Positions 481 through 52,100 of a stretch of DNA of 64,000 nucleotides are shown here, piece after piece (within the stretch, counting starts at the first letter, position 1; every line of letters begins with the position of its first letter). Below the pieces are notes generated by a model. That model was not told where the DNA came from. It saw only the letters and a program-made list of their open reading frames with translations, and ran no database searches. Source of the DNA: Podarcis erhardii (taxonomy: Eukaryota); the NCBI GenBank assembly GCA_964252035.1, contig OZ176200.1. One strand, given 5' to 3'. Both the position numbers and the translations under genes were made by a program.

Positions 481-3400
481 CATGATGGTGGGAGCTAGGA
501 ATATTTGGATGCAAAATGAGGGCTGCTTCCAGACAGGTTTTTCTTGTGTATGTATTCTGCTATGTTCCATCAATACCAGTGGGCATAGCTGCCATAATGG
601 GGGAAAGGAAGGTCAAATTTGCTGAGGGGTCACTTAGAAAACAAGTTGTGAGCCATGCTTTAAAATAAAATCAATTTATTGAATGCTAGCAGTTCATTCA
701 TTTAAGCATGATTGCTCATTGCTATTCATGGAATGTCAAAAAAAATGTTTGTTATGGATTGTTTTGCAGTTTCTAAGAAAGAAAGCATGTTGCTGAAATG
801 GTGGTGACCAGAAAGGGTTCTCGCCCTCTGTTTTCTAAATTAGAGTTCTAGTGCTATAGCACTCTTTCATTTTAAGCCACAGGTGGCCCCAACCTCATTT
901 TTGGTAGCCTCCCAATATCTCCCCAAGTTGCCGCAGTCTTCTGTCCTACTTCAGTTCCTTCTTACAATTCCTGGCTTTTTATAGTGTTTCTCCCCTTTTC
1001 TATATAGTTCTAAAGCAATTAAAAAGAGCAGTATTTTATTTGCTACAACTAAATGTCATTACTTACTCACTTTTCGCTTGGTTGTTTGACTTGGGAAGGA
1101 ACTTGCCACCCCCCCTCCCCCCACGTTGTCTAATAACTTGTTGGTAGGCTGTTGCCATGTGTATATCTAGCAAAATGAGAAAGCAATTACTTTCACTCGC
1201 TTTCCAAAAAACCCAAAAACTGCACTGGTCTGTTTTACTACTGAAAAAATAAACATCACCTCTGTATACTTCCTTGTGAGTAACTCCAACAAACCCAGTG
1301 GAGCTTACCTGCATAGGTTTGGGAATTCTAATTGAGATAGCCATGATGAAAATTGAAGCAGGGTGGTCTTTGTTCTGGATTAGTCAGAAAGTTGTCTTAG
1401 CACTAGAATGGTGTTATAAAATGGTACCTGCTACAAAGGTTATAGTGAATGTGTGCTGAACTGTGATAGGTTCACCATCCTGATAATCAGATACTGCCTC
1501 AAAAAACAGGCAGAAGAGTAGTGGCAAGAGCATCTACATTGGTAGATATTTTGCCTTCTCTTCTGCTTTCAAAAGTATCTGACCTTCTGCAGTAAGAAAA
1601 AAAAAAGACAGAAGCAGCACTAGGGAAAACATGAGAGGATTCCAGAATGTGAGTGAACAATGCATGGCAATTTGAAACTAAATGCTCAATGAGGAAGCAA
1701 CCTGGTCTCACTTCTGGCCTCTGGGTTGTTTCTTCTTTGGTGTCCTAATCAGGTCATGAAGAAGAGTCCATGGGGGCAGGGGGGCAGGGAGGTTGCAAAG
1801 CAGCACCAAGGAGAGCTCCTAGTGAGCAACATGTTTCAACAGTGTGTGAGACTGTAATGAATCCTTTCATGCCTTGGCAGTTGGGGAACCCCATGCTGGG
1901 TTCCAGCCCAGCCTTGAAAAGTGGGTGGCCTTAAAGGGTCAGCTCTTAGCCTGGAGGCTTGCATTTTGCTGCCCCTACGGGAGATCATGCCAGACATGCT
2001 GCCTGTGTTTCCCCACAAACTCTGTGCATAGTATGAGGCCCCTGGGAGGTAAGCATGCTGGTCATAGGCAGTGATGCAGTCTCTGGTCCAATCTCAGGAG
2101 TTCCCAGTTAAGCGATCTCTGTCTTCTTGGTCCCAGAATCTCTGGAATCTTATTCTAGGATACCCCTGGTTCAGTGGTGGTGCTTAGTCCCAGCGCTGCC
2201 TTGGTAACACTATTGGTTCCTTAGCCTTTGAGGCTGTCATGATACCACACTAGCAATCACAGTTGCCCACCTGGGAGAAAAGTTGGGAGCAGAGGCTTCA
2301 GACAGAAAAATCCCCTTTGACACATTAAACCTGGGGCCCTTAATGTAGTGTCTGTAGGTGCCACAGTACCCTCAGACACATCTCTTGGAACCTGCCACAG
2401 CTTTCTGCTCTTCTTGTTTTTTAATTGAGTGATTTTTTAATATTTACTTTGGGAGGTTTGGTGAGAGGGTGCATGGTTGCTGTTAGCTGGCAAGATGTTG
2501 CCTGTTTTGGTGGGGTATAGGTGTTTTGTTTGTGGGTTTTTTTTGGGGGGGGGTGTTTCTAAGCATTGCCAGTTTCTCTTCTGTGACGTGGGTATTTTGT
2601 GTTGCCCATTTTGATTTCTTAGATTTCCAAATGCATCTCCGACTTCCCAAAATGTTGGGGAGCCTGCATTAAACAAACAGGTGTCATTGGGGCCTATGTA
2701 ATCCTCTTGGCTGGTTCCACTGGATCTTGCTAAGAAAACTGGGGTGTTTATAGGATTGCTACCTCTCCTGGCAGATGAGTTGTCATTGCTCACTTGCATA
2801 TATGAATAGAGCTAAATGTGTGCAAATTAAAATTCCAAGGCTTCTCATTAATGCCTGTCTAAGCCAAAACAACATACTGGATTGTTAGGAAACTGGTTAG
2901 CCTGATTTACTAGGCCAGATAGCAATCAGCTTATTGGCTGGTTCTATTGTCCTAAATAAAAGCCACCAACTCCTCATAAACACACTTAATCACAAATCTT
3001 ATCTATCTGATGGGTACTTGCATACTTCATAAAACACACATACTTAATCCTTCGTGCATAGGATATTTTGTCACGGGGTGTGTGTGTTCATGTGTGTTAC
3101 TGCTTGTAATATGAAACCTTCCCTGGCAGCAGACTTTTGAGCAGAGTTTGTCTTCTCTCATTGATAAACTCAGTTCTGGAAATTCCCCTCTGCACAGTGA
3201 AACAATGCTGGGCTATGGGGATTGCAGCCTGCAGCTTGTGCTGTGGGAGCTTGCGTGACTCCAGCGCATCTCAGAGAGTATAAACAAAGCCAAAGCCAGA
3301 AACGTGCTCTAATTATAGCTGGCAAGCTTTGCATGGTGAGAGACTCTATGGTGCCTAAGAGTTCCCATCCTCACCTTCCCATTCAAATTGCTCGTAACTG

Positions 3401-5359: not shown

Positions 5360-5481
5360 AATAAGCTCATGGGCAAGCCGTTAAACCTTCACACAACTGT
5401 ACTGTGCAAATGCAATGGAAGATCTCATGTGGGTGGTGAGCATTGCAATGGTGACTAAGAGAAATGTGCTCTTTCTTGCAG

Positions 5482-5858
5482 GTTTCCGTGAGAGTGCTTT
5501 TGCCTATGCCATTGCAGCCGCAGGGGTGGTACATGCTGTCTCCAATGCATGCTCCCTGGGCAAGCTGCAGGCATGTGGCTGTGACCAGAAGCGCCGTGGG
5601 GATGAGGAAGCTTTCCGCCTCAAGCTGCACCGTCTCCAGCTGGAGGCCATGAACCGAGGCAAGGGGATGATGCATGGAGTGCACTTGGAACACATGCCAG
5701 CTGAGGCCCCAGGCCTGCAAGACTCCTGGGAGTGGGGGGGCTGCAGCCCCGATGTGGACTATGGGGAGAAATTTTCCAAGGACTTCTTAGATTCCCGGGA
5801 GACCTACCGAGACATCCACTCTCGCATGAGACTGCACAACAACCGTGTTGGCCGGCAG
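5482..5858 (+). CDS. WNT10A: Wnt-10a, penultimate coding exon (exon 3 equivalent)
   Basis: Translates to [24 protein letters not shown]...KLHRLQLEA...[12 protein letters not shown]...[10 protein letters not shown]...[12 protein letters not shown], which matches the vertebrate WNT10A exon-3 peptide. The [16 protein letters not shown] insert is Wnt10-specific. Acceptor ttcttgcag|GT at 5481/5482; donor CAG|gtgagc at 5858/5859. Confidence 0.97.
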
Positions 5859-6109
5859 GTGAGCTGAAAGCGCAGCAATGGGTTGGGTGGGGAGTTGGAG
5901 TCAAGGCTTGGAAAAAGGTTTCTGGGAGGGAGTCAATAACCCAGACAGTTCCTGATCTATAGAAATAAACGAGACTGATCATTCCAGCTCAGACACTCAT
6001 ATACCTGGTTGGTCCAAGATGGTTTGTACAGGGCTGGCGTAACTGAGAAATGCTGTCTGCATTTAATGTGATGGCAACTTCTGATGCAATCAGATGCAGA
6101 CTTGAGTCA

Positions 6110-11417: not shown

Positions 11418-13693
11418 GCTGGGAAGGAGGGATTGCTACAGTGTTAGAAACTGAGATATGAAAGGTAGAAGCTAAATGGCACCTTAAACCTAGGTTATGG
11501 GCGCAACAACAGAATGTCTAGGCACCCTTTTTTTTTTAACAAGAATACAAAGATGAAAATGAATGAACTGCAACTAAAATACTACTTTCATTTTTCACAT
11601 GGTCTAGTCCTTCCCCTGCCCACCCCCCTAATATTCTTAAGAGGGTCTCTTCTCCAGTCTTCAGAGAGTAGCTGGAAGTGGGGAGGCAGAAAAAGGTCCT
11701 CCTTTCCTTCCACTCTGCAGTTTTATTCTGAAATCTAGGCACAGTACTGCGCCCAGAGCTCAGAAACTGCTCACCCTAATGAAATTCTCTGTCACAAAAT
11801 GTGCCTAGAACAATGGGAGTTTTGAACACTGGCTACAAATGCACCTTGCCCATTGATCTTCACTTTGTGAAGCTCTTTTGACCAGTGGCAGTTAAAAATA
11901 ATGCACTTATTTTACTCCTGTGGAGCAGAAAGGCTCACCTTGTTGCTAAAACAGTGTTTGACTGCTATATCCAGCCAAAATGTGTGGCTTTCTTTCATCT
12001 CTTAGGACTAACCTGAAATTGCTTTGAAGCAGGAGAATGATGGTGTGTGTGTTTGTGTGTACATGATAGCAATGTGTTTGATAGGTGTGCAATGAGAAGA
12101 CTATGGTCACTGCCAGGAGACGGCAGAGTAAGATCCAGGCAGCACAGGAGCCACAAAAGGCCCTGTCAAAGAGGCATATATCCAAGAATGGTGATTGGGC
12201 CTGGCAATGACACATGGCAGCTGCACAGTTTGCATTACATTGACACCCAGGTACCCCAGCTGGGTTCTGGGACTGCGCTGCCCACAGTGCCCCAATGTAG
12301 TATTTCTACAGTGTATTGAAATGGTGTATCAGACTTAGCCAGTGGGCACTGATTGCAGCACTTTGCTGATAGCAGCACTTTGAGAGCATTCTTCAGAAAA
12401 GACCTTTCAAACCTGTAACCTGGCTCTCAAGGTGATAGAAAGGGCTTGTTCTTGTGGTGGGTTTTAGAGGGGAGACTTGGGAGGGAGGAATGGGACATCT
12501 CTCAGTTGTAAGTTAATTTAATAAAGTGGCAGTTCTATTTAATATGAACAAACTAGGCATATTTTGAGGAGCCCTAATAGGATTTTTTTAGAACTGGCCC
12601 ATGATGATGGGATACTTGTCCCCAATTTCTTACCATGTTAAGCATCTTTTTCTTTAAAAAAGCATTTTGATTCCCTCTGCCCTTCTCCCTCCTGGGACCA
12701 GTTTTCCACCGGATGCTTTCTTTGTGACCTAAAGGGTAGAATATTGGGAGTGAAGAAACTAAACCTTGGCTCCTACCAGCACTATTCAAGGAGACCCACA
12801 TTCTGGCTTCTCCTACGAAGCCTTTCCTGGAACATGCTGGTGGGTGTTCCACTCACTTGCAGAAACTGTCCCTTGCTGACAGAATTGCAGTAGATCCCTT
12901 GCCAGAGAAAAGACTCTTCGTGGTTTGTTTCTTTAAAAAGAAAAAAGAAAAAACCCCACTACAGCTGCAATCCTATATATATACTTACTTGGAAGTAAGT
13001 TTCATTGAACTTGGTGGGATTTTCATCCAAGTAAACATGCAATAGGATTGTACTGTGCAGCTGTTCTTTGAGATTAGGTGTCCTTTGAACAGTTGTACTT
13101 TCAAGCTCAGAGTAATGGGCTGGAGAGTGAGCGGAGGTGGGGGAGAGGAAGACATGCCCCTGCCTGGTTGCTATGAATGACCTTTTGTTATCCCCTTTGC
13201 ATGGTATAGACAGAGCTCTGATTTAGGAAAGATGGCTCTGGAGGGCTTCTCTGAGGGGGAGCAGCATTGTCCTCCCGCTGGTTTCTTTGGGAAGCCCCTG
13301 CCTTGGGCAGGATGGGAACTTTGTTCCTCAGCACCCTTCCCCAGTAGGGAAAGCACACAGGAAATGGTTTCCAAACCACTAGGTGGGTTGCAAGGGGGAT
13401 AATGGCTCCCAGCCTATTAGTGCTCTGTAATTTGGTGCTAATTTCCTTTATTACAGTGTTCCTGCATAGCAGGGGGTGGTGCTTGCTGCTTTCGGCGTGT
13501 GTGGGGTGTGTGTGGCTGATCTTGCCATCAAATCTGTGCAAGCAGCGGGGCTAGCACTTGGTGGGGAGATGGCACTGGCTTGCTCTGCAGGCTGGTATCA
13601 TGTGCCTGCCCTGGCCCCTTTTGTCTCTCTAAGAGGCACGGAGGAGCTTGCTTGGCAAGGCAGTCTGTACTGCAGCTGTGCTTGGTTAAGGGA

Positions 13694-18191: not shown

Positions 18192-18635
18192 GTAGTTACA
18201 TTTGTGTTAAAGAGTTATTGATGCTAACACTGTTTGTAATGATGCTTTTGTTTATATTTGTTTTTAGTTTGCATGTTAGCCATGTTTTATATACAATTTT
18301 AGTCCTGTTCTTTCCACCTGGAAAGTTGGGCTGTTGCTGTATTCAAGAATTGTGCTATCCGGCTTCATGAAAGTAGCAGTTTGAGCTCTGGTGGCTCTCC
18401 TTGGCCCAGCAAGATGAAGCAAGCCACTGGAGAACCCTTTGTGTGGCCACTTGTTTCAACTGGGCAAAACTGCATAGAGAGCCCTTTGCCCCAGCAGCAT
18501 ACACTGGTTCCAAGGGATGGCAAAGCCAAGCTGCCCATTGGGAACAAGGTGTGCTAGAGGGGAATACAAAACTGCAGTGCAAGGCAAAGCTTTAGCTGAA
18601 TTCTGCTAACCACTGTCTGCTTGTGCCCCTGGCAG

Positions 18636-19103
18636 GTGGTGATGGAGAACATGCGGAGGAAATGCAAGTGCCACGGCACCTCGGGGAGCTGCCAACTGAA
18701 GACGTGCTGGCAGGTGACTCCTGAGTTCCGCCTGGTAGGCTCCCTGCTCAAGGAGCGCTTCTATGGGGCCATGCTGATCCGGCCCCACAACAGGAACACA
18801 GGGCAGATGGAGCTGAGCCACGCCCGCCAGAGGCGCCGGGCCGGCATCAGCGACCTGATCTACTTTGAGAAGTCACCGGACTTCTGTGAGCGGGAGCCGG
18901 CACTGGACTCCATGGGGACGCAAGGGCGCTTATGCAACAAGACCAGCCCGGGCATGGACAACTGCGAGAGCCTGTGCTGCGGGCGGGGCCACAACATCCT
19001 GCGGCAGACACGCAGCGAGCGATGCAACTGCAAGTTCCATTGGTGCTGCTTCGTGGCCTGCGAGGAGTGCCGGCTCACGGAGTGGGTCAGCGTCTGCAAA
19101 TGA
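18636..19103 (+). CDS. WNT10A: Wnt-10a, terminal coding exon
   Basis: [26 protein letters not shown]...[12 protein letters not shown]...[39 protein letters not shown]. Contains the lipidated-Ser motif [10 protein letters not shown]. Acceptor cctggcag|GTG at 18635/18636 joins in phase 0 to the exon above; TGA at 19101-19103. Confidence 0.97.
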
Positions 19104-19960: not shown

Positions 19961-21944
19961 AGTGAATCAGAGATGGTGTGTGTCTGAGGGTGTAATGATG
20001 GAGACATGAGATTTGTTGTTGGGTAAAGCCTAGGGATGTCTACTTGCTTTGCGTGGCATCTCACGATAGCTCACACGTGGGTGCTTTGGTTTATGCCAGA
20101 TCTGCAAAATGGAACTGCAGGAAAAAGAGCACATGGGGGCCCCCTGGAAAGAAACATGCCAGTCTCTCCATCCAAAGCTCAGCAGTTGAGCTCCATGGCA
20201 CTCATTCTGATGGGTGATCCATCAGGCAGCCGTCACACTGGGAATGTTGTATTTATGGTCTCAACATGCATGGGCTGCTGAGATTATTTGTGGGGGGCGT
20301 TTGCCACGATACTTTCAAATTCTGAGGACTGCTGCTGCAGCCAGAAAATGTTTGCTGGATCAAGGCTGCAGTGGTGTCTCTAATCCTGTCCAAGAATCTG
20401 CTGTACTTAGGAAAGGGGAACAGGGGTGGCACTGGGGAGGACCTCAACATTTCCTAATTTGGAAAAGCACAAGAGGAGCAGAATGATCATTTAGTAAGGG
20501 AAAGGCTTCCCGCGTGTCAATGGGGCAGTAGCAAGGCTCTGGAAAGAGTCCCAAGTTACATCGTTCCAAGACAGAAATGACTTGAGACTGGGTGCTCTTG
20601 CTTGCTGGCTACAAATGCCCAATGACCCTTTTAGGTGGGCAGCCTGGGGTCCCAACGTATGGGCAGAATGTGCAAAGAATTCAGGGCCTGTGCTTGTGTG
20701 GTGATGATTCTGGTGAGAAGCAAGCTGTTGCATCCTAAACAGCCCTTGTTGCCCGCTTTGCCCTGCATGGGCTGGGTAACGATGAGTCACCCTATTGGTA
20801 TCTGGTGCTGTCTGATAAATCCCCACCCTGCCTATAATGTTGGCCCTGAGGCTCTGCAAAAGGAACACCAGACGGGAAGGGAAGGGAAGAGTGGGCAGGG
20901 TGCACCAGTCTAGTGTGCCAGGGGCACGGTGCACAGGCCTCGCCAGGGAGGAGCTCCCTGCAACCTTGTTTCATAAGGCTCCAAAGCGCTACAGGTTGGT
21001 TGGTGGTGGGTGGTATCTTGGTTTCACATTCTGGAGCTGTCAGCTTTTATTTATTTATTTAATTTGCACTCAGCCAAAGGTTGTGGGAGGAACCTCAGCA
21101 CCTGGAAGGCCTTTCTATCTATGGAGGGGGCACACGAGATTCTCTAGGGCCTCTAGATGGATGAACTGGGGAGGGCAGAGACGTCTACCACAATGCTCAC
21201 TACAATATTGGCACCTCTGGAAGCTTACCTTGCCAGCCCCTCCTTCCACAAGCTCTCAGTGTGCTCAAGGTGTGCTCAGGCTGCAAGGGGAACTTGGGAG
21301 CAGAGTGCCTGTTAAATTTTGTTTGTTTTACTTATCAGATTTTCCACCGAAATCCTAATCTAATAGCAAGAAAATATGGGGTGGCACTTTGATGAGGCTG
21401 CTGTCATGTAGATGTGGATGCTGCACAGAGGCCACAAAATAATGTTGTGTGGAAGTGCCCAGAGCTTCTGTCAAGAAAAAAGAAGTTATCCTCAGGAATA
21501 GTTTTGCCTTCAGCTGGGTCTTATTGCTGTTCTGACCAGAAGAAACATATGTGCATGTACATGTACACACAGAGACAAACTGCATGTTTGCTTCAGCTCT
21601 TATAAATGTCCCTATTTTCCAGAGAAAGTCTGGGATTTACAGAAACCGTCCCAGTTTCTGATTTGACCCCAGAATGTCCCACTTTTCCTTAGGACGTCCC
21701 CATTTTCATTGGAGAAATGTTGGAGGGTATGCTGAAGCAAACATGCAGTTTGCCTTCTTCAGAAGGGCTGATCTAGCCCAGTTGGCCAGAGTTGCCTCAT
21801 GGTAAGGTCTAAGCTCAGTGCCCTCACACACTTCATCCTGCCTGCCCCAATCCTTAAATGCTCTGGCCTCTTCCTAAACCCATATGGGATCCCTCTGTTC
21901 GCATCAGCATTCTCCACAACCACTTTGCAGGCTGGGGAAAGGAG

Positions 21945-30443: not shown

Positions 30444-33013
30444 ACCATGCTGCACTGTAGCAACCTGAAAGCTACTTCCACTGTTGGGGACAGTATGCTT
30501 CTGATTGCCAATTACTGGAACCCACAGGAGGGAAGAGTGCTGTTGTGCTCGAATGCTGCTTGTGTGCTTCCTGCAGGCATCTGACTGGCACTGTAAGAAC
30601 AAGATGCTGGACTAAATGGGCCACTGCCTTATCCTGCTGGATCTTCTTATGTTCTTAGCTTGGGGTTTATGGCCCCCGTCAGAATTTTTCTTTTTCTTTT
30701 TAAAGGACCAGCTCAATTCATTGGGTGATAAGAATATTGACTTATTTTATTCAATTACTAAAACGTGAGAGCATTTCCATACTGGTTGTTAGTGCCATTC
30801 AGTGCTGATTTGAGGTGCCTATAAAGCATATCCGACCTGCCCTGCTTGTGTTTTATGTATGTCTTTATTTGTATTTATAGCCAGCCAGTCCCAGGGCAGG
30901 TTAACAACAACTGTATATCAGGAGATGTAAAACATCTGACCTGCATCTGAAAGGCGTTGTCTGTGGTATGGGCACATTCTTAATGCATTGAACATTTTAC
31001 TGGGTTGAATAATTCTTCATGGCAAAATAGATGTTTAACCTTTAAAAAAAAGGGGGGGGGGGAGAACAAAGTGATTTATTGTTGGTACAATAAAAATCCA
31101 GCCCCTAACATTATTTACTGTTGTTGTTATCATCAGCATCTTCATCAGTATCATTATTAATTAATTAATTAACTAACTAACCCCCTTTTACATTCATTTC
31201 AAGGTGATTTATATGTCCACAGTGAGGAACACCAGATTGCTCCAAAAACAAAGATGTGCTGTATTGAGTAGATTTGGTGTGCTGAAGTTGTTAGTGGTCT
31301 CTCTGTGTGAGTCTCTGCCTAGGCATGATTTGGATGCATGATTTGGGTTGACTATGGCAGGACAGATAAACCCAATTAGAAACCCAGTTACTGAGAAGGA
31401 ATCAGGACTTGAAAAACTGGTTTTCTTATTCAGAGAAGAGTAACAGCTCAGAGACTCAACAGACCTTGGATGTTGTCAACATATTATCTGACCCTGATTC
31501 TGTGTCTTGAATTGCAGCTTGATCAGAGGACATAGAAAAGGGTAACCTAAATGCCACCACCACCACCTCACAAAAAACCCTCAACTTCCATCTGCATATC
31601 AAGTTGCTGTTAAAAGCACAAAATTGGAACAGGTTTTTTTCACCCTTGCTTTGGTCAACTGGTAACATTATGAGCAACAGCTGGAAAGCTCACCATTGTT
31701 ATTTACTGGGGTGAGTGTCCCCTTGTGGTCCCTTCCAACTCTAGAAGTTTTATGATTCTATAATTTGTTTGCAGCAAGGTTAGACAATGTTGCATCGACA
31801 TTGTCTATCCCACACTTTCCAGTGTGTTTCCCCATCGCTTTCCTTACCGCAAAAAGTCCAGTCTTTGTGGGAGGTGGGTTTGTTGTACAAGACCTCCAGA
31901 ACGGACCACTGGGCCTTCTAGCCTGGCACTGCCTCCATTTACTGGCAGGGCGACTCTCCAGGGGTCCAGACAGGAGTCCCTTCCAGCCCCATGTGGAGAT
32001 GACAGGGACTGAACCTGAGACCACTGAGCTGCAATCATTGGGTGGTGTAGGCAGGATTGAGAAGTGTACTATGGTTACCCTATTCTGTAGCTTGCTCATA
32101 GCAGAACCCATGCCAGTAGAGGCTGGTGTGGCTCGACCACTGATCTGCCCCAGGTTGGTTGGCTCTTACCTTGCTTTGGGAGCTGAGGTGAGCTGCGGTT
32201 TGATGATCCAGCACATTCCCAGCTGCCGCTTGGGCGAGGCCAGATGCCCAAGAACGATGCCATGTCTAGCCAGGCTGCAAACAACCAAACTCCGGCAGGC
32301 CATAACTCTGTAATTACTGCAACATAGACAGTGGGGCTGGGGTGGGGGGGAGAACAATTCAAACCTGCGTATATAAACACTGCTGTGCTATCTTCTCCCT
32401 GGCATCACCCTCGGGCTCAAAGAAAGCTCTAATTTTAGGGCTTAAGAGTGGGGGTGGTTGTTATTGAAAGGGCTGTGGCCAAACAGAGCTTTCATCTCGG
32501 CTGGCTGAGGAAGAGCACATGGGGTTTCAGGATGGGTGACTGGCTGCTGGGAGCCCTTCCCTCAGATGCAAGGACAGCTCCGGATCTGGGGGTGACGAAG
32601 CCTTGTCCTTTGAAGCCTGCATTTCCCTGGCACTCCACCCCGTACCATCCTATCATTGCACTGCTGATCAGACATTTCCATTGGGTGGGGGTGGGGTTGC
32701 ACAAGAGAATCTGACCCAACTGCTAACTCTGGAAAAGGACCTCAGAGGTCTCAGCAACAGAAAATCATGGCTTCCTGGAAACTCCCCCAAGTGGTTGTTA
32801 GATTATCTTCCCTGGCAGGATTCTGACCCCTAACAGATGCTCATTGCTGTTGTACGAAAAGCTTCTGTAGGAAATGGTTCCAGAGCTTCCTGGGCTAAGG
32901 AGATGAGTTTGCCGGAGGACCCCTTCTTGCCTCAGCTACAACCAATTCCTTCTTCTCCCTATTTTTGGTTGACCTTTGGAAATATTTAATCTCCCTCTTC
33001 TTTTCCACAGCTT

Positions 33014-43090: not shown

Positions 43091-44004
43091 GGTATCTTAT
43101 TTTTTATACAGTATTATGAACCCTACTATTCAGAGATCATGACCTACACCAATCTGGTACTCACTGCTGATTACAGTATAGCAGATCAGAAACAAGGGAG
43201 AGCCTGGCGTGGGCAAAATCCATGGCGCATGCTCAGACTGCAGCACACGCACGGCGGTATCCCTTCAAAACTGCCATGCAGGCATAAACCCTATTTAGGT
43301 GCTTACATTTTGGTGTATTTGTGACCTTCCATGCACTTGCATGTATCCACTCAAGATGTGCAGCTTGGTGTGACGATCCCTAGTTTTCGTGCAAACACAC
43401 CTCTGCAGAGACACCTCCCTTGGCCTCTTTTGGAAACAGAATACCAGGCTAACTGGGTTGTGGACTGACCCAGCCAGGAGAGTCCTGTGTCCTTCTGCGT
43501 GCTGGCAAGCTAGGTGTTTGTATATCTGTAGGGCTCATGCACCTGCATGCATCTCTTTGTGTTTTGCTGTGTGCATTTACATGTCTGGGTTTTTGTTTTG
43601 TTTTGTTTTCAGCGTGTCACTCATGTCTCCAGGCCCAGCTCACTCCGCAGGAATCTCTAGCCGCCGGGCCCTGTTCTAGATGAATACACTTGAAAGCATT
43701 TTTTCTCTCTTAGCTACTAAATTTCCCTTTGAGAAGAAAGGAGTTGGCTCACTTCATCTTCATTAGTGTCGGGGAGCATTGGGGGGGGGCTGCTTTTGCT
43801 GCAGTGCCACCCCTTCCAGCCTCTCACTTAGTCCCTCCCTCCTGCCCTGAGTCACTGGCCCTTTGGATATGGGCTTCCAGCCAGGAGGAGGCTGCTTCCT
43901 TCCCTGCACTGACCAGCCTCTCATTTTAATCCAGAAAGGTACCATAGATATTATAGGATATCCAGGTTCATGGCTTTCAGTTCACCCTTTCATACTAATT
44001 GTAA

Positions 44005-44235: not shown

Positions 44236-45658
44236 ATGAAGGCACCAAGCTGTTTTGATACTTTGCTGTAGAACTTCCAGAAGTTTATTTGTTGGTAACT
44301 TTGGAAGTGTTACCATTGGCTTTGTTACACCTCAACGCTTAATAGTTTGTCATACCTTTTGTGGATGCAGATGCCATGGTTCATGAGATAGGTGCTCTAG
44401 GAAGATTGTCAGCTGCTGTTTAGGAAAACGGTTTCCGCACACTGACGTCTGCCAGCCTGTTTTGTCTACCTATATTTCCCCCCATTCCAAATTGTGCTGT
44501 GTCGTACAAGTGGAAATTGACATAAGTGATGACTTTTCTTCTGACTGCTACAGGACTGTATAAATATGTGTATTTGTCAACACAGAATTCTCAACTGAGA
44601 TTGAAACTTTAAAATCTTCTCCAGCCCCCCAAAGCAAGAGGATGAGACAAAAAGGAAGTCTCTGTCAAATCTCTAGTGCTCCCCCAAAGTCTTGGAGAAC
44701 AGGATACATCACGTGCTGATGCAGTGAATTCTGGGAGTTTGTTTCCTAATTAAATTAGGGGAAAATAAATCACTAGTGCTTTGAAAGACAAAATATTAAG
44801 AGAATCAATCAGCCCAGTTCGTCCCTTCTGTTTGTCTACAAAGGAATCCTTGGAACTCTTTAATGAGTAGGAGGCAGTGTTTATGATGTATATGAGTAGC
44901 ACAGGGAATGTGATGCACTGATTTATAGATGGTGTGTGCATCTCAGGGCCAAAATAAGTGCAGTGTGAGGATACAGGTGCCTGCGTTGCATTTGCATTTC
45001 CCCCCGCTGTGAAACTAAATGTGAAGCAGATATGGGAGGGGCAGTTTAGATCTGGGAAAGGGCAGGAGCATTAAACTCCCCAGCCCTGCTGCTCCAAACA
45101 AAATAAGAATCCACCCCATAAAATTAGAGCCCCTTCCCCCATTTACTTTATGTGTTTTCCTGTAGTTCCCTCCTTCCTCACAGAGCTACAATTCCACGCG
45201 CCCTTAAAAAACTACAGTTCCCAGGATTCTTGGGTGTGTGTGTCTGTCATGTGCTTTAAATGTGCATTGAATGTGTTTCACATGTACAGTGTGGATCTGC
45301 CCTTGACTTTCAAGAGACCGCTTTAGGCTTTGACACTGAATGGCATTTGATTATAATTCACACACATCCATGTACTTGGCACTTTCTTGGGGGCACACTT
45401 TTTTATGCCAGTGGCTGCTATGCTCTTTGCACGTGAAACTCTGTAGGAGCTGCTTCTGCAGGGGCTCCTACACCTACTCTCTGCCCCCCCCCCCCGCAGC
45501 TGTGGTATGTGTGTCCTGGCACAGATCTCAGACATGTCTGTGGCTCACCAAAATTCCAGCCACAAAGGAGAGACCATGAAGGAAAGAGCATCATCCAGCT
45601 AAATGGATATTAGTGTTAGAAGCGAGGGAGGGCAGGAGGGGCCCTAACTGATCTCCCA

Positions 45659-45680: not shown

Positions 45681-45800
45681 CAACCTTCACCAACCCTGGT
45701 GCCCTTCTGTTTTGAACCACAACTTCCATTAGCCCCAGCCAGCAACTATTGGGAGTTGTAGTCCAAAACATCTGGAAGGCCCCAAGTTTTGCAAGGGCTG
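45681..45800. mobile_element. Palindromic hAT MITE
   Basis: caaccttcaccaacc...acaacttccatt...gggagttgtagtcc...gcaagggctg. Confidence 0.6.
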
Positions 45801-46225
45801 CTGCCATGCTTAAGGGTAGCATTTCAAACTCTAATGCAAAACAAAACATTGACCTGATTGGGTTTCTGGTAGATTTAATCCAAATGCGCTTTAGATAAGC
45901 TGAGAAGGGCTAGCTGAAACAGGGGCCTTCCTAAGATGTACAGGATCGAGAAGAGGATGGTGGTGTACTTTCTAACCCTGTCCCACCTACCAGAAGAAGT
46001 CCTGTTAGTCACTATTGTTTCTTTGGGTAACACCTAGCAACTAGCTGACTGTTACCGGTCTACTTTTGTTAAGCTTGGGTGAGGGAATTAATAACAGGGC
46101 CTCTCTCCTCTTCTGACTTTTTAATGTTTGCTTTTAATCGATGATCTTGCCCAGCTACCGTTTTATCAACCAGTTTGAATTCATGCCACTGCTGCTTGCA
46201 GTGGGGCTGTGATGATGGTATCTAA

Positions 46226-46404
46226 TTAGCTAATACCAGAGCAAATGCCTTTAGTTATGAAAAGAGAGATCATCTTCATCACAGATTCCATCAATTGGTC
46301 GATAAATGTGCTCGAATCCATCTTGCTCCATATTGTCATATGCATTTGATGTTGCTATGTTGGTTCTGGTTTGGGAAGCTCCTTCCTCACCAAGGCCTCT
46401 GCTT
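46226..46404 (-). pseudogene. Decayed, out-of-frame continuation of the AKAP4-like coding sequence
   Basis: After the TAG, a different frame (46321-46226) reads MDSSTFIDQLMESVMKMISLFITKG..*, resembling AKAP4 GQFIDKLVESVMKLCLIMAK. It is separated from the main ORF by a frameshift and by stops in both frames. Confidence 0.7.
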
Positions 46405-47994
46405 CTATCCCCTGTTTTTGTCCCCGCAGTTCTCGTCTAGATTTAAGCCAGCTTCATCCAAAATCTTCTGGACCATGGACATTATGAGGTGTCCTTTATC
46501 TTTCAGGCTGTCCGAATGGCAGGGGTCTGCTTTTCTGTCACATGACCTGTGTGAGAATTTGGGGCCACAGCTCCCCTCCGCCCTGTCATAGTCACGGGGA
46601 ATGTAGCCATATGAGGAGGTGTTGCATTCACGAGGTCTGCAGTCTTTGTTCTTTTCCAGCAGGTGCTGCTGTATCTGCTGCAATGCTGTGACCAGAAGCT
46701 CTCTGGCATACAGATCCAGGGACTGCTTGTCCGGCACCTTGGTTCCTGCTGGAAAATGTTTCCTTGGGCATGGGCCACCTGCTCTTTCCTTTCCATAGTC
46801 ACAAGACTCCCTTTTCATGGATGCAAACTGCATGCCCTGACTGCAATGGCCCCGGGCCCCCCCTGCTTTATAGTTTGCAAAGGTGAAGTTTTGAGCTCTG
46901 TACTGCTTATCGTCTCCCAAGATGAGTTTAAACAAGCGCTTCACCATGACTTCCAAAACCTCCGCGGTCTTCTGGGTTCCAGCCTTGTAAAGGTTCCTCT
47001 TCAGTCCACAAACAAAATCAGAGTCTGTCATGAGCGCCCCTGTGATGTTGTGCAGGTTTTTCATGGAGGAGTCTATTAAGTCTGATACGATTTCCTTGGT
47101 GTGCTTCATAAGTACCTCTTTCAAAACAGCACATGCTGGCGGAGGGTGCCTACCTTTCTGGACTCTCATGGTCTTCAGGAAAGACAGCATCATGTCTGAA
47201 GCAACCTGATTTGCATACACCATCATCCCTTTGCTTATGGAAGTCATGTCGTCTGCTTTCCTGTCTTTGTCCATATACATGGCTTCATGTTGCTTGAAGT
47301 CATTGTGGTTTGCCATGTCCCCTGAAAATGGGTCGTCCCTCTTGATTTCTGGAGGCGTCTTGCATCGTTCCATATTCTCAGCTATATTCACCTTGTTCCT
47401 GTTGTTGTGGGGGCTAATGATATGGCGGGTGCATTTCCCTGAGCTTTCCCATTTCTCCTTGATCTCCTTGCGTGTCATTTCAACAACTAAGTTGCAGAGC
47501 TTATTGGCGTAATAGGCAATGTCATCTGAGTTCCCTCCTTCACTACCGGCACTGGAAGAAGTGTTGTTGTTGTTCCTGGATGCCAAGTCAAGTACCTTAG
47601 TCTTGCGAGGCTTTCTTAAGGATGTCAGCGCATGTTGGAATCCAACTGCATATTTCTGGAGGTCATTGTTGAGCCAGCTGACAACATTGTCATCATCAAT
47701 GGAGCCTTGCTTGAAAAGGCAAACTGCTCCCTCAGTATTAAAGCAGCTGTTTTGCTCATTGTCCTTGATTATGATGACCTCTCTCTCTTCCATATTCGCC
47801 AAGTCCAGCTCATTGTCAGGGTCAGAGATGTTCTTGGATCGACCAGTAGCTCCATCTCTCTCCTTTGAGTTCAGGTTGGCAACGTCGACAAAGCAAATCA
47901 CTTTACGTTCCTGGTCTTTATGTGTATCAGGGCTGTAGAGGTTTATCTTGCACACACCAGCCTGGCTGCTGAGCCAGTCTACTTCCTGTGCCAT
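46405..47994 (-). CDS. AKAP4: Intronless A-kinase anchor protein 4-like (AKAP4/AKAP82-like, sperm fibrous sheath), 529 aa, C-terminally truncated; probable retrogene
   Basis: Collinear with remembered mammalian AKAP4 blocks: VDWL...GVCKINLY..., RKVICFVDV, EEREVIIIKD, TEGAVCLFKQ, DLQKYAVGFQHAL, DDIAYYANKLCNLVVEM, SISKGMMVYANQVASDMM, KHTKEIVSDLIDSSMKNLHNITGALMTDSDFV. The ICFVDV, EGAVCLFKQ and KYAVGFQHAL blocks are AKAP4-like rather than AKAP3-like. Good Kozak context (aaagATGG). Confidence 0.9.
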   Translation of the reverse strand: MAQEVDWLSSQAGVCKINLYSPDTHKDQERKVICFVDVANLNSKERDGATGRSKNISDPDNELDLANMEEREVIIIKDNEQNSCFNTEGAVCLFKQGSIDDDNVVSWLNNDLQKYAVGFQHALTSLRKPRKTKVLDLASRNNNNTSSSAGSEGGNSDDIAYYANKLCNLVVEMTRKEIKEKWESSGKCTRHIISPHNNRNKVNIAENMERCKTPPEIKRDDPFSGDMANHNDFKQHEAMYMDKDRKADDMTSISKGMMVYANQVASDMMLSFLKTMRVQKGRHPPPACAVLKEVLMKHTKEIVSDLIDSSMKNLHNITGALMTDSDFVCGLKRNLYKAGTQKTAEVLEVMVKRLFKLILGDDKQYRAQNFTFANYKAGGARGHCSQGMQFASMKRESCDYGKERAGGPCPRKHFPAGTKVPDKQSLDLYARELLVTALQQIQQHLLEKNKDCRPRECNTSSYGYIPRDYDRAEGSCGPKFSHRSCDRKADPCHSDSLKDKGHLIMSMVQKILDEAGLNLDENCGDKNRG

Positions 47995-48036
47995 CTTTGT
48001 TAGTTACAAGTAGAAATGGATCAAGAGCTGTGCAGT

Positions 48037-48406
48037 GTTCTTCTTCCAGCTGAGCAGCTTGGATGACCCGGCCAGACTTGGGATGTTGGCTCCTCTTAAT
48101 CTTCCATGCTCTTTCTACCTCCAGGTGGTCTTCTCACTTATGTGGACACATAACAGCAGTGGTGACTTCACAAAGCATCAATGTTTTCCCACCAACCAGA
48201 AAAGAGTTGCCAAATGCTTTAGCAAGAGTGTGTCTTTCCACCACTACTGTAACCAGGGCTGTAGAGAGTCGTTCTTTTCAGATGAGCTGCTTTGGTGACC
48301 CTGCTAGACTCAAGATGTTACCTCTCTTATCTTTCCATGCTCTTCTGCCAGCAAGGGACATTTTCACTTGTGTGGACATGTAGCAACAATGACATCACAA
48401 AGCATC
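48037..48406 (-). promoter_or_regulatory. Tandemly duplicated ~140-bp module upstream of the AKAP4-like ATG, each copy with a CRE-like octamer
   Basis: Units 48037-48179 and 48271-48406 align at roughly 70-75% by eye. Both end in TGAC(T/A)TCAcaaagcatc: TGACTTCA at 48163-48170 and TGACATCA at 48390-48397. Confidence 0.6.
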
Positions 48407-49937
48407 CAACCCACCCACCAACCAACTAACCAACCAACCAACCAGGGAGGTGCCTGTGTTTTAGCTTTGTAATTTTCTTAAACTATCATCTAGATGAAGA
48501 TTAAGACAATTCCTTTGAGCAGTCAATTTGATGACCAAGAGAATAAGTGGAAGCATGTGGATCTCTGAGCAGGTAAGAAAGAGACCCACTAGGAGGCAGA
48601 CCCAGTTTATGTGTTTCATCCTGTTTCATCTTTTGATGGATCCACATTTCAGGTTAACCTGGTACTTGCTAATGCTATTTTTCAGAAAGTATGTTTACCT
48701 CTTTCTTTTTGTGGGGAGGTTTCCTACATCTGGAATTCAAATGGAACACTTACATTGGCTAGACAGTTCATTCCACTTTCTGTCCTGCATTAATAGCCCT
48801 CAGGGGTGACACAATCCAGACTGAAATGTGTTCGTAGAATCAGCTAGGAAAACTTTCACATCCAGGTCTGATGTAAACTTATCCAGAACTAAGCAGCACT
48901 TCATTAAGGACAGCACTGAACTAAAGTTACTCATCACTTTTTGCAATCATTTTTTGCATTGCTGGGAAATGCCTTCTTTTTTGACACTATGCAAAAATGT
49001 TTGCTTTTTGGTTAAAATTGCTATCATTTCCCAATACTGATGCCAGCATATACAGCCAAATCCAATTGGTTGCTTTTACTCCCATGTTTTTATTTACTGG
49101 TGTCGAAGAACATCATAATGCCAGATGTTATACCAAATAAGCATTTACATATATAGTGCTTTGATAAGTGTTCAAAGTGCTGGGATTACATTTTCTTTTA
49201 ATCTTTACAACCTACCCCTGTAAGGTAGTATTATTATTTCTGTGTTGCAGAGGGGGACAGAGGCTGAAGGGGAAATTCTTGCTCAAGGCCACCAAATGAG
49301 CTCCATGGCAGAAGTGAGAGACAGACCAGGTAGTGTTCTGATGCTGTTCTGCTCATTACATGATCTCTGATTGGCCTGGATCACCCACAGGGAAATTTCT
49401 GTTCCAGCAAAATTGTTAGATTCAGTTGCCAGAAGCAATCACACCAATGTGATATGTCTGGCAGCCATCCCATGATAAGCCAAAGGACACTACCTCCACC
49501 CCCGGATTGAGCCCATTTGCATTATATTTTGTCTCATCATTCTCCCAGCCCCTTTTGGGCAGCCCCTTCCCCAGTGCATTGGGAATGGAGCTATTAGCAT
49601 TGTCACTGTATTCCAAGGATGTTGCATTTGCTCATGGATGATTTCTGCTGGATTTGCTGCTCTCCGCTCATGAACAGGCACAGGTGGGCAGGCCAACTGT
49701 GAACCAGATTGGGCAAAAAGCTTAGTCCACATCCCAGGTTATCTGTGCAAGTGGTCGCTTTCATGCCATATGCTGGCATGCTCTAATCTTTCAAGCACGG
49801 GCTTTAACAAAAAGGAACCAGCCAGCTTCCACAAGGCGAAGGGAATAAAGAAACCAGAGAAGAACAAGCCTGCCTCCTGGTGGCAGATTCTGGGGTGGTA
49901 CCCAGCAGCAACATTAAAATGAGCTCTGAGGCCCCAT

Positions 49938-50022: not shown

Positions 50023-52100
50023 TTCCGCTGTTCTGTACTCCAGGGGCTGAATTACCTATTCCTCTGGGATTAGACCCTCCTTTGTTTTGCCCGGCTGATG
50101 AGATTTTATTAAAATACTGTACTCTCTGGCCTTTGGCAATATCCAGGTGAGCATTACTGGCTCACGGCACCATCGTACCTGTCTCAGAAGCTCAGTGGGG
50201 CTTAACTCCCAGATACACAGGTATAGGCTTGCATCCTTAAAATGTAGCATAGTAGAGGAATGCTGCCATTCTTCAGGAAAAGTGGAAGGGATGCTGTGGG
50301 ACCAAAGTTCAAGTCCCTATTTGGCCATGGAGCTCACTGGGGACCCTTGGGTCAGACACAGCCTCTGAGCTTAACAAACTCGTGGGGTTGTTTTGAGGAT
50401 AAAATGGAGAGGGGGAGAATGATATATATCATATTAGGCTCCTTGGAAGACAGGTGGGATATAAATATAATAGGTAGATAAATGGGCATAGCCAGAATTT
50501 ATGTTGTGTTGGGGAGGGGGCAGAACTGAGCTATCTGCAATATGATTGGTCAGTTAACTGAAAAATACTTAATTATTTTTATTTATTTACTTCAATTTGA
50601 GGGGCAGCTGCCTCTCTACGCCGTTGGGTGGGTAGGTAGATAGGTAGGTAGATTTGAGATAGGTAAGTGGAGAGAGATTTAAGGAGCTTCTTTCCCTGCC
50701 TCCTGCCCACCAATATTATGTCTGTATGGCCCGGCTGTCTCTCTGCAGATGCTTCAGGGTGCTCTGGTATATATTTGATATGCAATGTTGTAGCACTGCA
50801 AACAGATTCTGGGTATCTGTTTAAATTCTCAGGCTGGGATGGGTGGTGGCGCAAAATTGCTGCTGCTTTGGCTCTTTGTGTCAGGCCAGTGGGTCTGGTC
50901 TCGGGGCGGGTGTCACATTCCTCTGGCAGCCACAGACAGAAACTGGGGTGGGGGAGGTGACTTAGTCCGGCTCCCCCTCTGTGTGACAGAGCAACATTCT
51001 GTCTGGTCGCAGCCCCCACTTAAGCTGCAGGTGTGTGGGTGATGGGCGGGCAGCTCTCCCACTGACAGGCAAGGAGGCTTTGATGCCAGGGGCTGGGGGA
51101 GGAGGCAGCCCATGGACCCGAGTTCCTTTCCCATGGGCCTACGGTAGCTTTCCACATGCACCCTCCATCTCTTCCCATGACATAGTTTGCATTTCTCTCT
51201 CTATCTTATCTTGCTCTTGTTCTCCCTCCCTCCCTCTCTCTGTTCACTCCTCTGTTCCCAGCTGCGCCCCGGTTGTTTTATGGTTCTCAGCCCTGGGCCT
51301 CCACTAGTTCTCCACCTGTGCCCCCACCAACCATCCTGCTGAAGGAGGAGATGGCAGGTCTCCTTGATAACAGACAGGCAAAACAAAGACCTTCTGTGCC
51401 ATGATGAGTAAGGGAAGAGCAAGGAGGGGTGCGGTGAATGTCTTGTACACACCGGACAAAGAGACCTGATCAGTAGATTTGAGTGTGTGCATATGATGTG
51501 GGATTGCTAAAATATTGTACCTGTCATTTCTGGAGCTGACATATACTGGGCTGGCTGGGACTCTTGGTGTGTGTGTGTGTGTCTTGAGGAGCCTTGCCTA
51601 GTATACACACAGGTTAAAGTGTTCCTCAGCATTAACTACTTCATGCTGATAGTGAATCATCAGTTGTCTTCTCTGCTCCTGTTGTTGCACTGCGCTGCTC
51701 TGCTCTTCCTCTAAGACAGCCAGAAATGGCTGCCGCTGGAAGTGCAACACCGGACTCAGGATAACTCACAGCCCGATGTTACCATCCAAACAAAGGTATT
51801 TCCTGGCCAAATCCCAGAGCTTTCTTCCCAGCGATCAGTTCCATTCAGTGAAAAGTAGTACTGAACTAGCGCTAACTGGCCTTTGAACACAGTTCCAAAA
51901 CGGAGGCAATAAAACTCTCTCCACCCACTCCCCTTCCTCCTCCTCCACAGTGTTTAATATTCCTTGCAATGACAGATTCCTCTTTTTATTCCCCTCCATG
52001 TTCTGGCCAATAATCTCTGAACAAGTGGCAATTATTCCTGCCCAGCTGTTTGAAGGTAGCAGCCTTGCTGTCGATGCCAGCAGTAAAATGCCCTCTAAAC

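Follow-up and report, generated by a model that had tools for sequence, protein, structure and literature searches.

The locus examined here raises the question of whether the missing introns of an AKAP4-like gene record the insertion of an mRNA-derived copy beside WNT10A, as was proposed in the initial annotation, or are older than the gene itself. The gene lies in a stretch of 64,000 nucleotides (nt) of the Podarcis erhardii genome (contig OZ176200.1 of assembly GCA_964252035.1), hereafter called the window. In the fibrous sheath of sperm, AKAP4 is the chief structural and protein kinase A (PKA)-anchoring protein, and it is indispensable for motility in mice. In the following, A denotes the open reading frame (ORF) of 529 residues in the window together with its orthologs, B the squamate AKAP4 of about 680 residues and C the squamate AKAP4 of about 790 residues. 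The analysis indicates, with good confidence, that A is a functional gene and a squamate-specific paralog of the fibrous-sheath scaffold AKAP4.

The AKAP4-like gene, its relatives and its transcription

In the ORF listing of the window, A is one unbroken frame with an ATG start, and was the only ORF of more than 220 residues in the 64 kb. The uninterrupted AKAP4-like frame of 1,590 nt on the minus strand that had been described before was recovered in full, and its first 32 codons do run straight into the ICFVDV segment, codon 32 ending at 47899 and codon 33 starting at 47898. The translation belongs to the AKAP_110 family, which comprises AKAP3, AKAP4 and SPHKAP (Pfam PF05716; 138.8 bits against a cutoff of 25, E = 2.7e-40, residues 234-363) and is 99% identical to a P. 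raffonei protein named 'A-kinase anchor protein 4-like'. A is already annotated by the NCBI pipelines as 'AKAP4-like' in many squamates; it is otherwise a new member, uncharacterised so far, of a known family. No paper on reptile AKAP4 paralogs or on their intronless structure was found in literature searches on AKAP4 that covered retrogenes, intronless genes, reptiles and promoters; according to a 2025 review, which does not discuss gene structure, AKAP4 originated in tetrapods (PMC12083921).

Group membership and absences were drawn from the best 120 of the 268 matches of a protein search with A. Three groups of squamate AKAP4-like proteins were found, namely A (508-540 residues), B (680-696 residues) and C (780-798 residues). 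Intact A orthologs are present in lacertids, Rhineura (an amphisbaenian), Varanus, Pogona, Hemicordylus, Sceloporus, Anolis, geckos and snakes, and at least 13 squamate lineages have an open frame. In P. raffonei, Zootoca, Rhineura, a gecko and a snake, A consists of a single exon, the gene range being equal to the coding sequence (CDS) and the translation equal to the query. The stop context '..CGDKNRG*' is common to lacertids and Rhineura, and is near-identical in the snake ('..CTDKFRG*').

The ratio of nonsynonymous to synonymous divergence (dN/dS, or omega) was 0.18-0.30 in pairwise comparisons among six A orthologs, except for the near-identical pair of the window and P. raffonei (0.04); between the window and Zootoca, dS was 0.118 and omega 0.21. 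The dN/dS check that had been suggested among orthologs therefore gave values well away from about 1, and the earlier claim that the frame is kept open by selection is supported both by these values and by the intact frames. For the same species pair, omega was 0.30 for A and 0.12-0.135 for B, and the dN of B evolved about three times more slowly than that of A. Purifying selection is about twofold more relaxed on A than on its parent B.

Logan contigs from three runs and two organisms, whose RNA status is the library type guessed by the tool, were collinear and gapless on A (45956-48398; 45895-48397, at a depth of 889; and 45986-48221). These contigs are unspliced and 2.2-2.5 kb long, and the flanking bins were at zero depth. 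In one raw RNA-seq run with the same species label, A reads were limited to a trace of about 1.5x in bin 46841-47024; because almost no reads fell on A, this run is useful only as a sign of restricted expression. Some samples therefore contain an unspliced A mRNA of about 2.5 kb, whereas others do not. The main start of transcription cannot be fixed from the 5' ends of the contigs, because the assembly is interrupted at a microsatellite and the contigs could have been lengthened by minor upstream transcripts (3-12% of depth). A gecko Akap4 expressed sequence tag was linked to active spermatogenesis, the paralog not being identified (PMC4795608). The open frames in deep orthologs, the dN/dS values and the RNA depth of up to 889 with silent flanks are together what characterises a functional gene.

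A maximum-likelihood tree of 63 proteins was built with AKAP3 as outgroup. The AKAP4 clade was separated from AKAP3 with a support of 99, and the window protein fell within group A. A (support 100) was sister to squamate B (100), with Sphenodon outside A plus B (92); the C, turtle, crocodilian and mammal copies branched farther out than Sphenodon, and mammalian AKAP4 was sister to all sauropsid copies. Branching inside A and inside B was largely that of the species tree, with geckos first. The topology places A as a duplicate of B that arose on the squamate stem, after the tuatara split and before the divergence of geckos. The earlier view of a squamate-specific copy was borne out on the present sampling by both the tree and the protein search. 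In P. raffonei, A lies on CM049750.1, and B (682 residues) and C (790 residues) lie in tandem on CM049754.1, inside a PHC-like gene, which together with the tree agrees with the proposal that the ORF is AKAP4-derived and sits at a locus away from its parent. The suggestion that A replaced the parental AKAP4 was refuted, as Podarcis retains both B and C.

No bird AKAP4 was seen among the best 120 of the 268 matches or among the 50%-identity representatives; birds were represented by AKAP3 only, several entries being labelled 'low quality'.

Intron loss and the origin of the copy

The multi-exon structure and split N-terminus that had been described for mammalian AKAP4 were confirmed at the rat AKAP4 locus (10 kb), where coding introns follow residues 41, 57, about 92 and 796. 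The junctions were resolved one by one, except that the intron near residue 92 was placed by tblastn alone; those after residues 41, 57 and 796 are phase-0. The phase-0 intron of 1,306 nt between QDQDRKV and ICFVDVS (after residue 41) falls at the position of the codon 32/33 junction of A. An extra intron of 3.5 kb follows exon 1, and exon 2 opens with the main ATG. By comparison, the coding sequence was read straight through in P. raffonei C (2,373 nt, 790 residues), Rhineura B (2,061 nt, 686 residues), the turtle Mauremys (2,376 nt, 791 residues) and, for an AKAP4-like gene, alligator (2,385 nt, 794 residues). Each of these four genes is antisense to, and within the span of, a gene that encodes about 1,000 residues with zf-FCS_1 and SAM domains; no PHC-like host exons were found in the 10-kb flanks of the turtle and alligator genes, and the host is therefore named 'PHC-like' only.

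Tinamou AKAP3 has phase-0 introns after residues 31 and 749. The first is at most one residue from the first coding intron of rat AKAP4, and the last is in the same alignment column as the rat intron after residue 796. Because positions and phase coincide, these introns are considered ancestral. A profile of the sauropsid upstream sequence matched positions 2818-2965 of the rat AKAP4 locus (E = 5.8e-11), where exon 1 ends at 3027; since this rat-exon-1-like sequence lies about 55 nt from the sauropsid ATG, the 5' intron is gone as well. The comparison indicates that all AKAP4 introns were lost in the sauropsid lineage before turtles, crocodilians and lepidosaurs diverged. A does not lack introns that its parent has, since B and the other sauropsid AKAP4 genes examined are single-exon. 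Because B was already single-exon, A is intronless by inheritance, and this state carries no signature of its copying. The inference that the missing mammalian introns betray an mRNA-derived insertion is contradicted by the intronless B, C, turtle and alligator genes, 5' intron included; it assigns the intron loss to the wrong event and to the wrong locus. The initial annotation had itself considered that sauropsid AKAP4 might be ancestrally intronless at this locus: the intronless ancestors were found, but they sit at another one.

We lean, by a little, towards the reading that the whole sauropsid AKAP4 family descends from one fully processed gene derived from complementary DNA, A being a second-generation offshoot that shed its C-terminal domain and keeps about 90 nt of dead coding sequence in an element of its 3' untranslated region (UTR) that by now exceeds the protein in conservation. 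It appears somewhat probable, to the same degree, that five ancestral introns were lost more than 280 million years ago, and that the copy came to lie antisense in the PHC-like gene and replaced the multi-exon form. The ancestral leader or promoter-like module and the poly(A) region would, on a slightly better than even chance, nonetheless have been retained.

The unit copied from a lepidosaur B-type AKAP4 was a complete gene, consisting of about 260 nt of upstream module, the coding sequence and about 220 nt of 3' sequence with the poly(A)-signal region. Its source was the AKAP4 cluster antisense in the PHC-like gene, and its landing site another chromosome, 27 kb downstream of WNT10A. Later, the upstream module was duplicated in tandem in A. 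The conserved C-terminal 165 or so residues were lost through a stop after '...CGDKNRG', through frameshifts and through a deletion of about 0.4 kb, and the coding remnants became fused with the parental 3'UTR. Homology between A and its parent covers only parental positions -262 to about +215/230 past the stop, with no other collinear homology, and A is away from its parent and without the parent's neighbours, as expected of a retrogene. No target-site duplication is visible, and its survival would not be expected.

The odds that A moved as reverse-transcribed mRNA or as DNA are about even. Retroposition of an already intronless B-type mRNA, a tentative reading, would account for a solitary, gene-sized copy on another chromosome and for a homology span close to the size of the A transcript. 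The upstream module, with its conserved minimal upstream ORF, would at least in part be transcribed leader, and both module copies lie within A's own transcripts. However, the shared block starts about 55 nt upstream of a pair of elements, one resembling a cAMP response element (CRE) and one TATA-like, which resembles a core promoter and is conserved between rat and reptiles, and the block runs 45-60 nt past AATAAA through a U-rich motif similar to a downstream sequence element; a mature mRNA would hold neither. In addition, no poly(A) remnant was found at A, the A-rich run past the hexamer being present in the parental genomic DNA as well. A small duplication or transposition at the DNA level, carrying promoter, gene and terminator together, can be put forward with the same reserve. 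It would explain why the whole conserved upstream module with its promoter-like elements and the sequence past the poly(A) hexamer were retained in A, and also an immediate correct expression. On the other hand, interchromosomal DNA copies of about 2.7 kb are uncommon, no parental flank or neighbour gene was carried along (though none would be expected still to be alignable), and the RNA contigs show that the module is transcribed in A. Because only constrained sequence aligns after more than 150 million years, the limits of the shared block may be those of constraint rather than those of the original copy.

An earlier origin of A, on the lepidosaur or sauropsid stem and with later loss outside squamates, is improbable. 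The position of the tuatara outside A plus B has only moderate support, and the A branches are about three times as long as those of B, so that the placement of A may be distorted. Nevertheless, a clade of B and Sphenodon was rejected in an approximately unbiased (AU) test run on a reduced set of 26 rows with LG+G4, no A-like protein from tuatara, turtles or crocodilians was found among the best 120 of the 268 matches, and A and B carry common lepidosaur-specific sequence features. Very unlikely is the proposal that A is a retrocopy of a spliced, multi-exon AKAP4 mRNA, with its missing introns recording the insertion into the WNT10A flank. All the rat AKAP4 introns are indeed missing from A, and A and the other AKAP4 copies are on different chromosomes, but B, the nearest relative, as well as C and the turtle and alligator genes are single-exon and without the 5' intron; A nests in an intronless clade, and the loss is older than A by the whole sauropsid radiation. 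That A is a recent processed pseudogene open by accident, for which the missing C-terminus is the only argument, is virtually excluded by the open frame in at least 13 lineages, the stop context shared from lacertids to snakes, the dN/dS of 0.18-0.30 and the high RNA depth.

Several points weigh against our preferred reading of A as a functional PKA-anchoring paralog that arose from B on the squamate stem. The position of the tuatara outside A plus B is only moderately supported (SH-aLRT 92; AU test p = 0.021, for a group named after the tree had been seen), and the absence of A from tuatara, turtles and crocodilians concerns protein databases and not genome searches. The tissues of the RNA runs are coded, so that testis expression of A is deduced from its family, and the contigs are strandless. 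RII_binding_1 (PF10522) was below threshold on A, with 13.6 bits for B and 21.7 bits for rat AKAP4, and PKA anchoring by A would be predicted from a single source, the alignment of the helices.

Leader, 3' untranslated region and neighbouring sequence

The coordinates of the features of the A gene and of its neighbours are given in the table.

Features of the window at and around A (positions on the 64,000-nt stretch)
Feature	Position	Strand	Basis
CDS of A, probable squamate-specific truncated AKAP4 paralog, 529 aa, single exon	46405..47994	-	ORF, Pfam AKAP_110, dN/dS
5' leader under RNA contigs	47995..48398	-	two contigs end 48398/48397
Ancestral AKAP4 upstream module, tandem copy 1	48246-48402	-	alignments
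Ancestral AKAP4 upstream module, tandem copy 2	48034-48224	-	alignments
Putative CRE-like octamer TGATGTCA, 5' edge of module copy 1	48390..48397	-	sequence and module alignment
Putative counterpart of the octamer in module copy 2, TGAAGTCA	48163-48170	-	module alignment
Minimal upstream ORF, copy 1, ATG GAA AGA TAA	48327..48338	-	alignments
Minimal upstream ORF, copy 2, ATG GAA GAT TAA	48096-48107	-	alignments
TGGT-type microsatellite adjoining module copy 1 on its upstream side; RNA contigs are interrupted here	48399..48453	.	sequence; repeat skipped in read mapping
3'UTR under RNA contigs	45895..46404	-	contig ends 45895, 45956, 45986
Out-of-frame ghost of AKAP4 CDS in 3'UTR, '..DNMEQ..FIDQLVESVMKLC..AKG'	46263..46345	-	tblastn, blastn
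Homolog of parental 3'UTR (about +62 to +220 past stop), with poly(A)-signal region	46099..46262	-	blastn, alignments
Internal WNT10A exon	5415..5867	+	Pfam wnt, E 1.5e-30
Last coding exon of WNT10A, convergent with A	18621..19103	+	Pfam wnt, E 1.9e-61

Both module copies of A match positions -262 to -20 of the B, C, turtle and alligator AKAP4 genes, and the exon-1 region of the rat locus (2818-2965). The module is tandemly duplicated in all A orthologs and single in B. The idea of a companion annotation that the duplicated module is a de novo promoter was rejected, as the module is inherited AKAP4 upstream sequence, matching B, C, turtle, alligator and rat. Mouse Akap4 was strongly down in Crem knock-outs, and the gene table gives 'No / No' beside Akap4 (PMC3285179); because of this entry, the CRE-like motif is not claimed to be functional. 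The minimal upstream ORF (ATG, two codons and a stop) has a constant position in the AKAP4 leader, being shared by rat, turtle, alligator, B and C and by nearly all A copies. Its stop alternates between TGA and TAA and is yet retained; in rat, it lies at about 2893-2904 of the AKAP4 locus.

A is collinear with B up to about residue 517 of B and then ends at '..CGDKNRG', the C-terminal 165 or so residues of B being gone. The C-terminal AKAP110 domain that characterises the AKAP4 clade (FIDQLVESVMKLC ... LDWLLANL) is not present in A. The 3'UTR was searched by tblastn with the B, turtle, alligator and rat proteins, and by blastn against the B, turtle and alligator coding sequences. Past the stop of A, '..YDNMEQ..' and '..FIDQLMESVMKMISLFITKG..' were found in two other frames, and were recognisable in lacertids, Rhineura and gecko; of the C-terminal domain, only an out-of-frame ghost of FIDQLVESVMK is left. 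The coding remnants abut the homolog of the parental 3'UTR (+62 onward) and, because they join +62 directly, a deletion of about 0.4 kb is implied. That the segment past the stop is still coding was rejected: between gecko and lacertid, 9 of 25 codons differed nonsynonymously and one change was purely synonymous, the snake has a 7-nt deletion, the gecko is without a start codon, and the substitutions show no codon pattern.

The homolog of the parental 3'UTR was matched by blastn in the P. raffonei (1529-1641), Rhineura (12137-12247) and turtle (12464-12560) loci. The poly(A) hexamer of A is ATTAAA at 46133-46138, and the Podarcis RNA contigs extend 150-240 nt beyond it. The first 310 nt or so of the 3'UTR of A are conserved across squamates, with conservation reaching 46086-46102 in gecko and snake. 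The core '..GCTGGGCAAG.TCATCAATAAAAAA' is common to B, C, turtle and alligator, and the poly(A)-signal context (GCTGGGCAAG.TCATCAATAAA) is conserved in the sauropsid AKAP4 paralogs; a close variant of each occurs in rat. Within the 3'UTR, the block 46099-46345 (minus strand), part of which is dead AKAP4 coding sequence, is conserved above the non-synonymous sites of the protein. Its identity to the window, compared with that of the third codon positions, was 98.6% against 92.7% in Zootoca, 92.9% against 73% in Rhineura, 75% against 58% in gecko and 75% against 55% in snake. A structured RNA was considered for this block and rejected, as the covariation term of RNAalifold was positive (unfavourable) and the pairs were almost all invariant; Rfam gave no match in the window. 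With no covariation and no Rfam match, the constraint would act on the primary sequence, and plausibly reflects post-transcriptional control and polyadenylation.

At 45737-45920 and 45185-45368, RNA contigs and reads reached a very high depth in all four runs, with numerous loose ends. These stretches are expressed interspersed repeats outside A, which terminate the 3' contigs.

The proximity to WNT10A stated in the initial annotation is correct: the WNT exons are on the plus strand, and the last one is 96% identical to Gekko japonicus Wnt-10a, compared with 63-67% to Wnt-10b. A lies downstream of WNT10A, the two genes being convergent and 27 kb apart. CDK5R2 was not found within the 64-kb window, and WNT10A was not found within 10 kb of A in the P. 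raffonei, gecko and snake loci. Conserved non-coding blocks around A (window 32125-32518, 43451-43920 and 51934-52070) are collinear in gecko, snake and Rhineura, and the A locus is for this reason considered orthologous across Squamata; synteny is argued from these blocks and from Gekko kuhli, in which A and Wnt-10a are on equally long contigs. The block of 394 nt at 32125-32518, between WNT10A and A, is 87% identical to gecko (20252-20636 of the gecko A locus), which is far beyond neutral expectation, and probably acts as a developmental enhancer in the WNT10A region. The block of 470 nt at 43451-43920, about 2.5 kb downstream of A, is 80% identical to Rhineura and 70% to snake, with no obvious ORF, and was not covered by the mapped reads. 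Mammalian AKAP4 is X-linked; A, by contrast, is autosomal beside WNT10A.

The truncated protein and its place in the AKAP4 family

Retained in A are the strongly conserved 125 residues at the N-terminus, both anchoring helices, the second together with the central AKAP_110 core, and the C-terminal 'VQKILDEAG' block. Both amphipathic helices of AKAP4 align in A and are conserved among its orthologs. The C-terminal domain missing from A is the most conserved part of AKAP3 and AKAP4. From these features, A may be a post-meiotic PKA-anchoring scaffold of the sperm tail that has dispensed with the C-terminal AKAP110 domain and its functions, and probably works alongside full-length B and C. The first helix opens with 'YYAN' in all A proteins (residues 157-160; window 47515-47526), with 'YYVN' in B, turtle and mammalian AKAP4, and with 'FYAN/FYAD' in AKAP3. 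The YA/FA dipeptide has been described as an RI-anchoring determinant in a 2025 review (PMC12083921).

Mammalian AKAP4 belongs to the same AKAP_110 family and clade as A, which is collinear with it over residues 1-529. They have in common the N-terminal MxxxxDWL..VCLFKQ..LQKYAVGFQHAL block, the first helix (DDIAYYANKLCNLVVEMTRKEIK in A, DDLSYYVNRLSSLVIQMARKEIK in rat) and the second helix VYANQVASDMM, and the upstream leader module, the minimal upstream ORF and the poly(A)-signal context of the mammalian gene are homologous to those of A. However, the two proteins are 37% identical, the rat gene has at least five introns and A has none, and A is without several internal segments and without the C-terminal 165 or so residues (..FIDQLVESVMKLC..EVIVNNQ..LQWxxASQFNVP..KGYSVGD..LDWLLANL). 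Squamate B (680-696 residues; XP_028587390 and XP_053246503 of Podarcis muralis and P. raffonei), the sister and presumed parent of A, is about 50% identical to it and has the same single exon, upstream module and 3'UTR element, but lies in tandem with C in the PHC-like gene, has one module and keeps the C-terminal domain. AKAP3 (AKAP110) is of the same family and shares with A the N-terminal DWL motif and the 'YA' dipeptide (YYANKL in A, FYANRL/FYADKL in AKAP3). It differs from A in being the outgroup of the tree, in having introns, in lacking the ICFVDV..EEKEVIVIKD segment and in keeping the C-terminal domain.

PGK2 is a testis-expressed intronless retrogene, and A resembles it as a single-exon, dispersed paralog, with germline function, of a gene that is multi-exon in mammals. 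The same likeness holds for PRKACG, which has been cited as intronless and retrotransposon-derived (PMC12083921). A differs from these testis retrogenes in that its immediate parent is intronless, the upstream module was carried along, and neither a poly(A) tail nor a target-site duplication can be seen. For these reasons A is without the defining evidence of retroposition, and its 'processed' look is that of the whole sauropsid family.

The use of mammalian exon structure as the reference misdates and misplaces the intron loss of reptiles, which calls for caution in the calling of retrogenes. A processed AKAP4 throughout sauropsids is a more interesting lead than the claim of a retrogene at A; that sauropsid AKAP4 is intronless while mammalian AKAP4 and AKAP3 share introns was not found in the literature searched, and this gene history is directly testable. 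The minimal upstream ORF, present from rat to lizard, and the block of the poly(A) region are candidate handles on the delayed translation that is typical of spermatid mRNAs. Three diverged squamate AKAP4 genes, one of them without the C-terminal domain, amount to a natural dissection of the parts of AKAP4, and A is a candidate gene for sperm-tail features specific to the squamate lineage.

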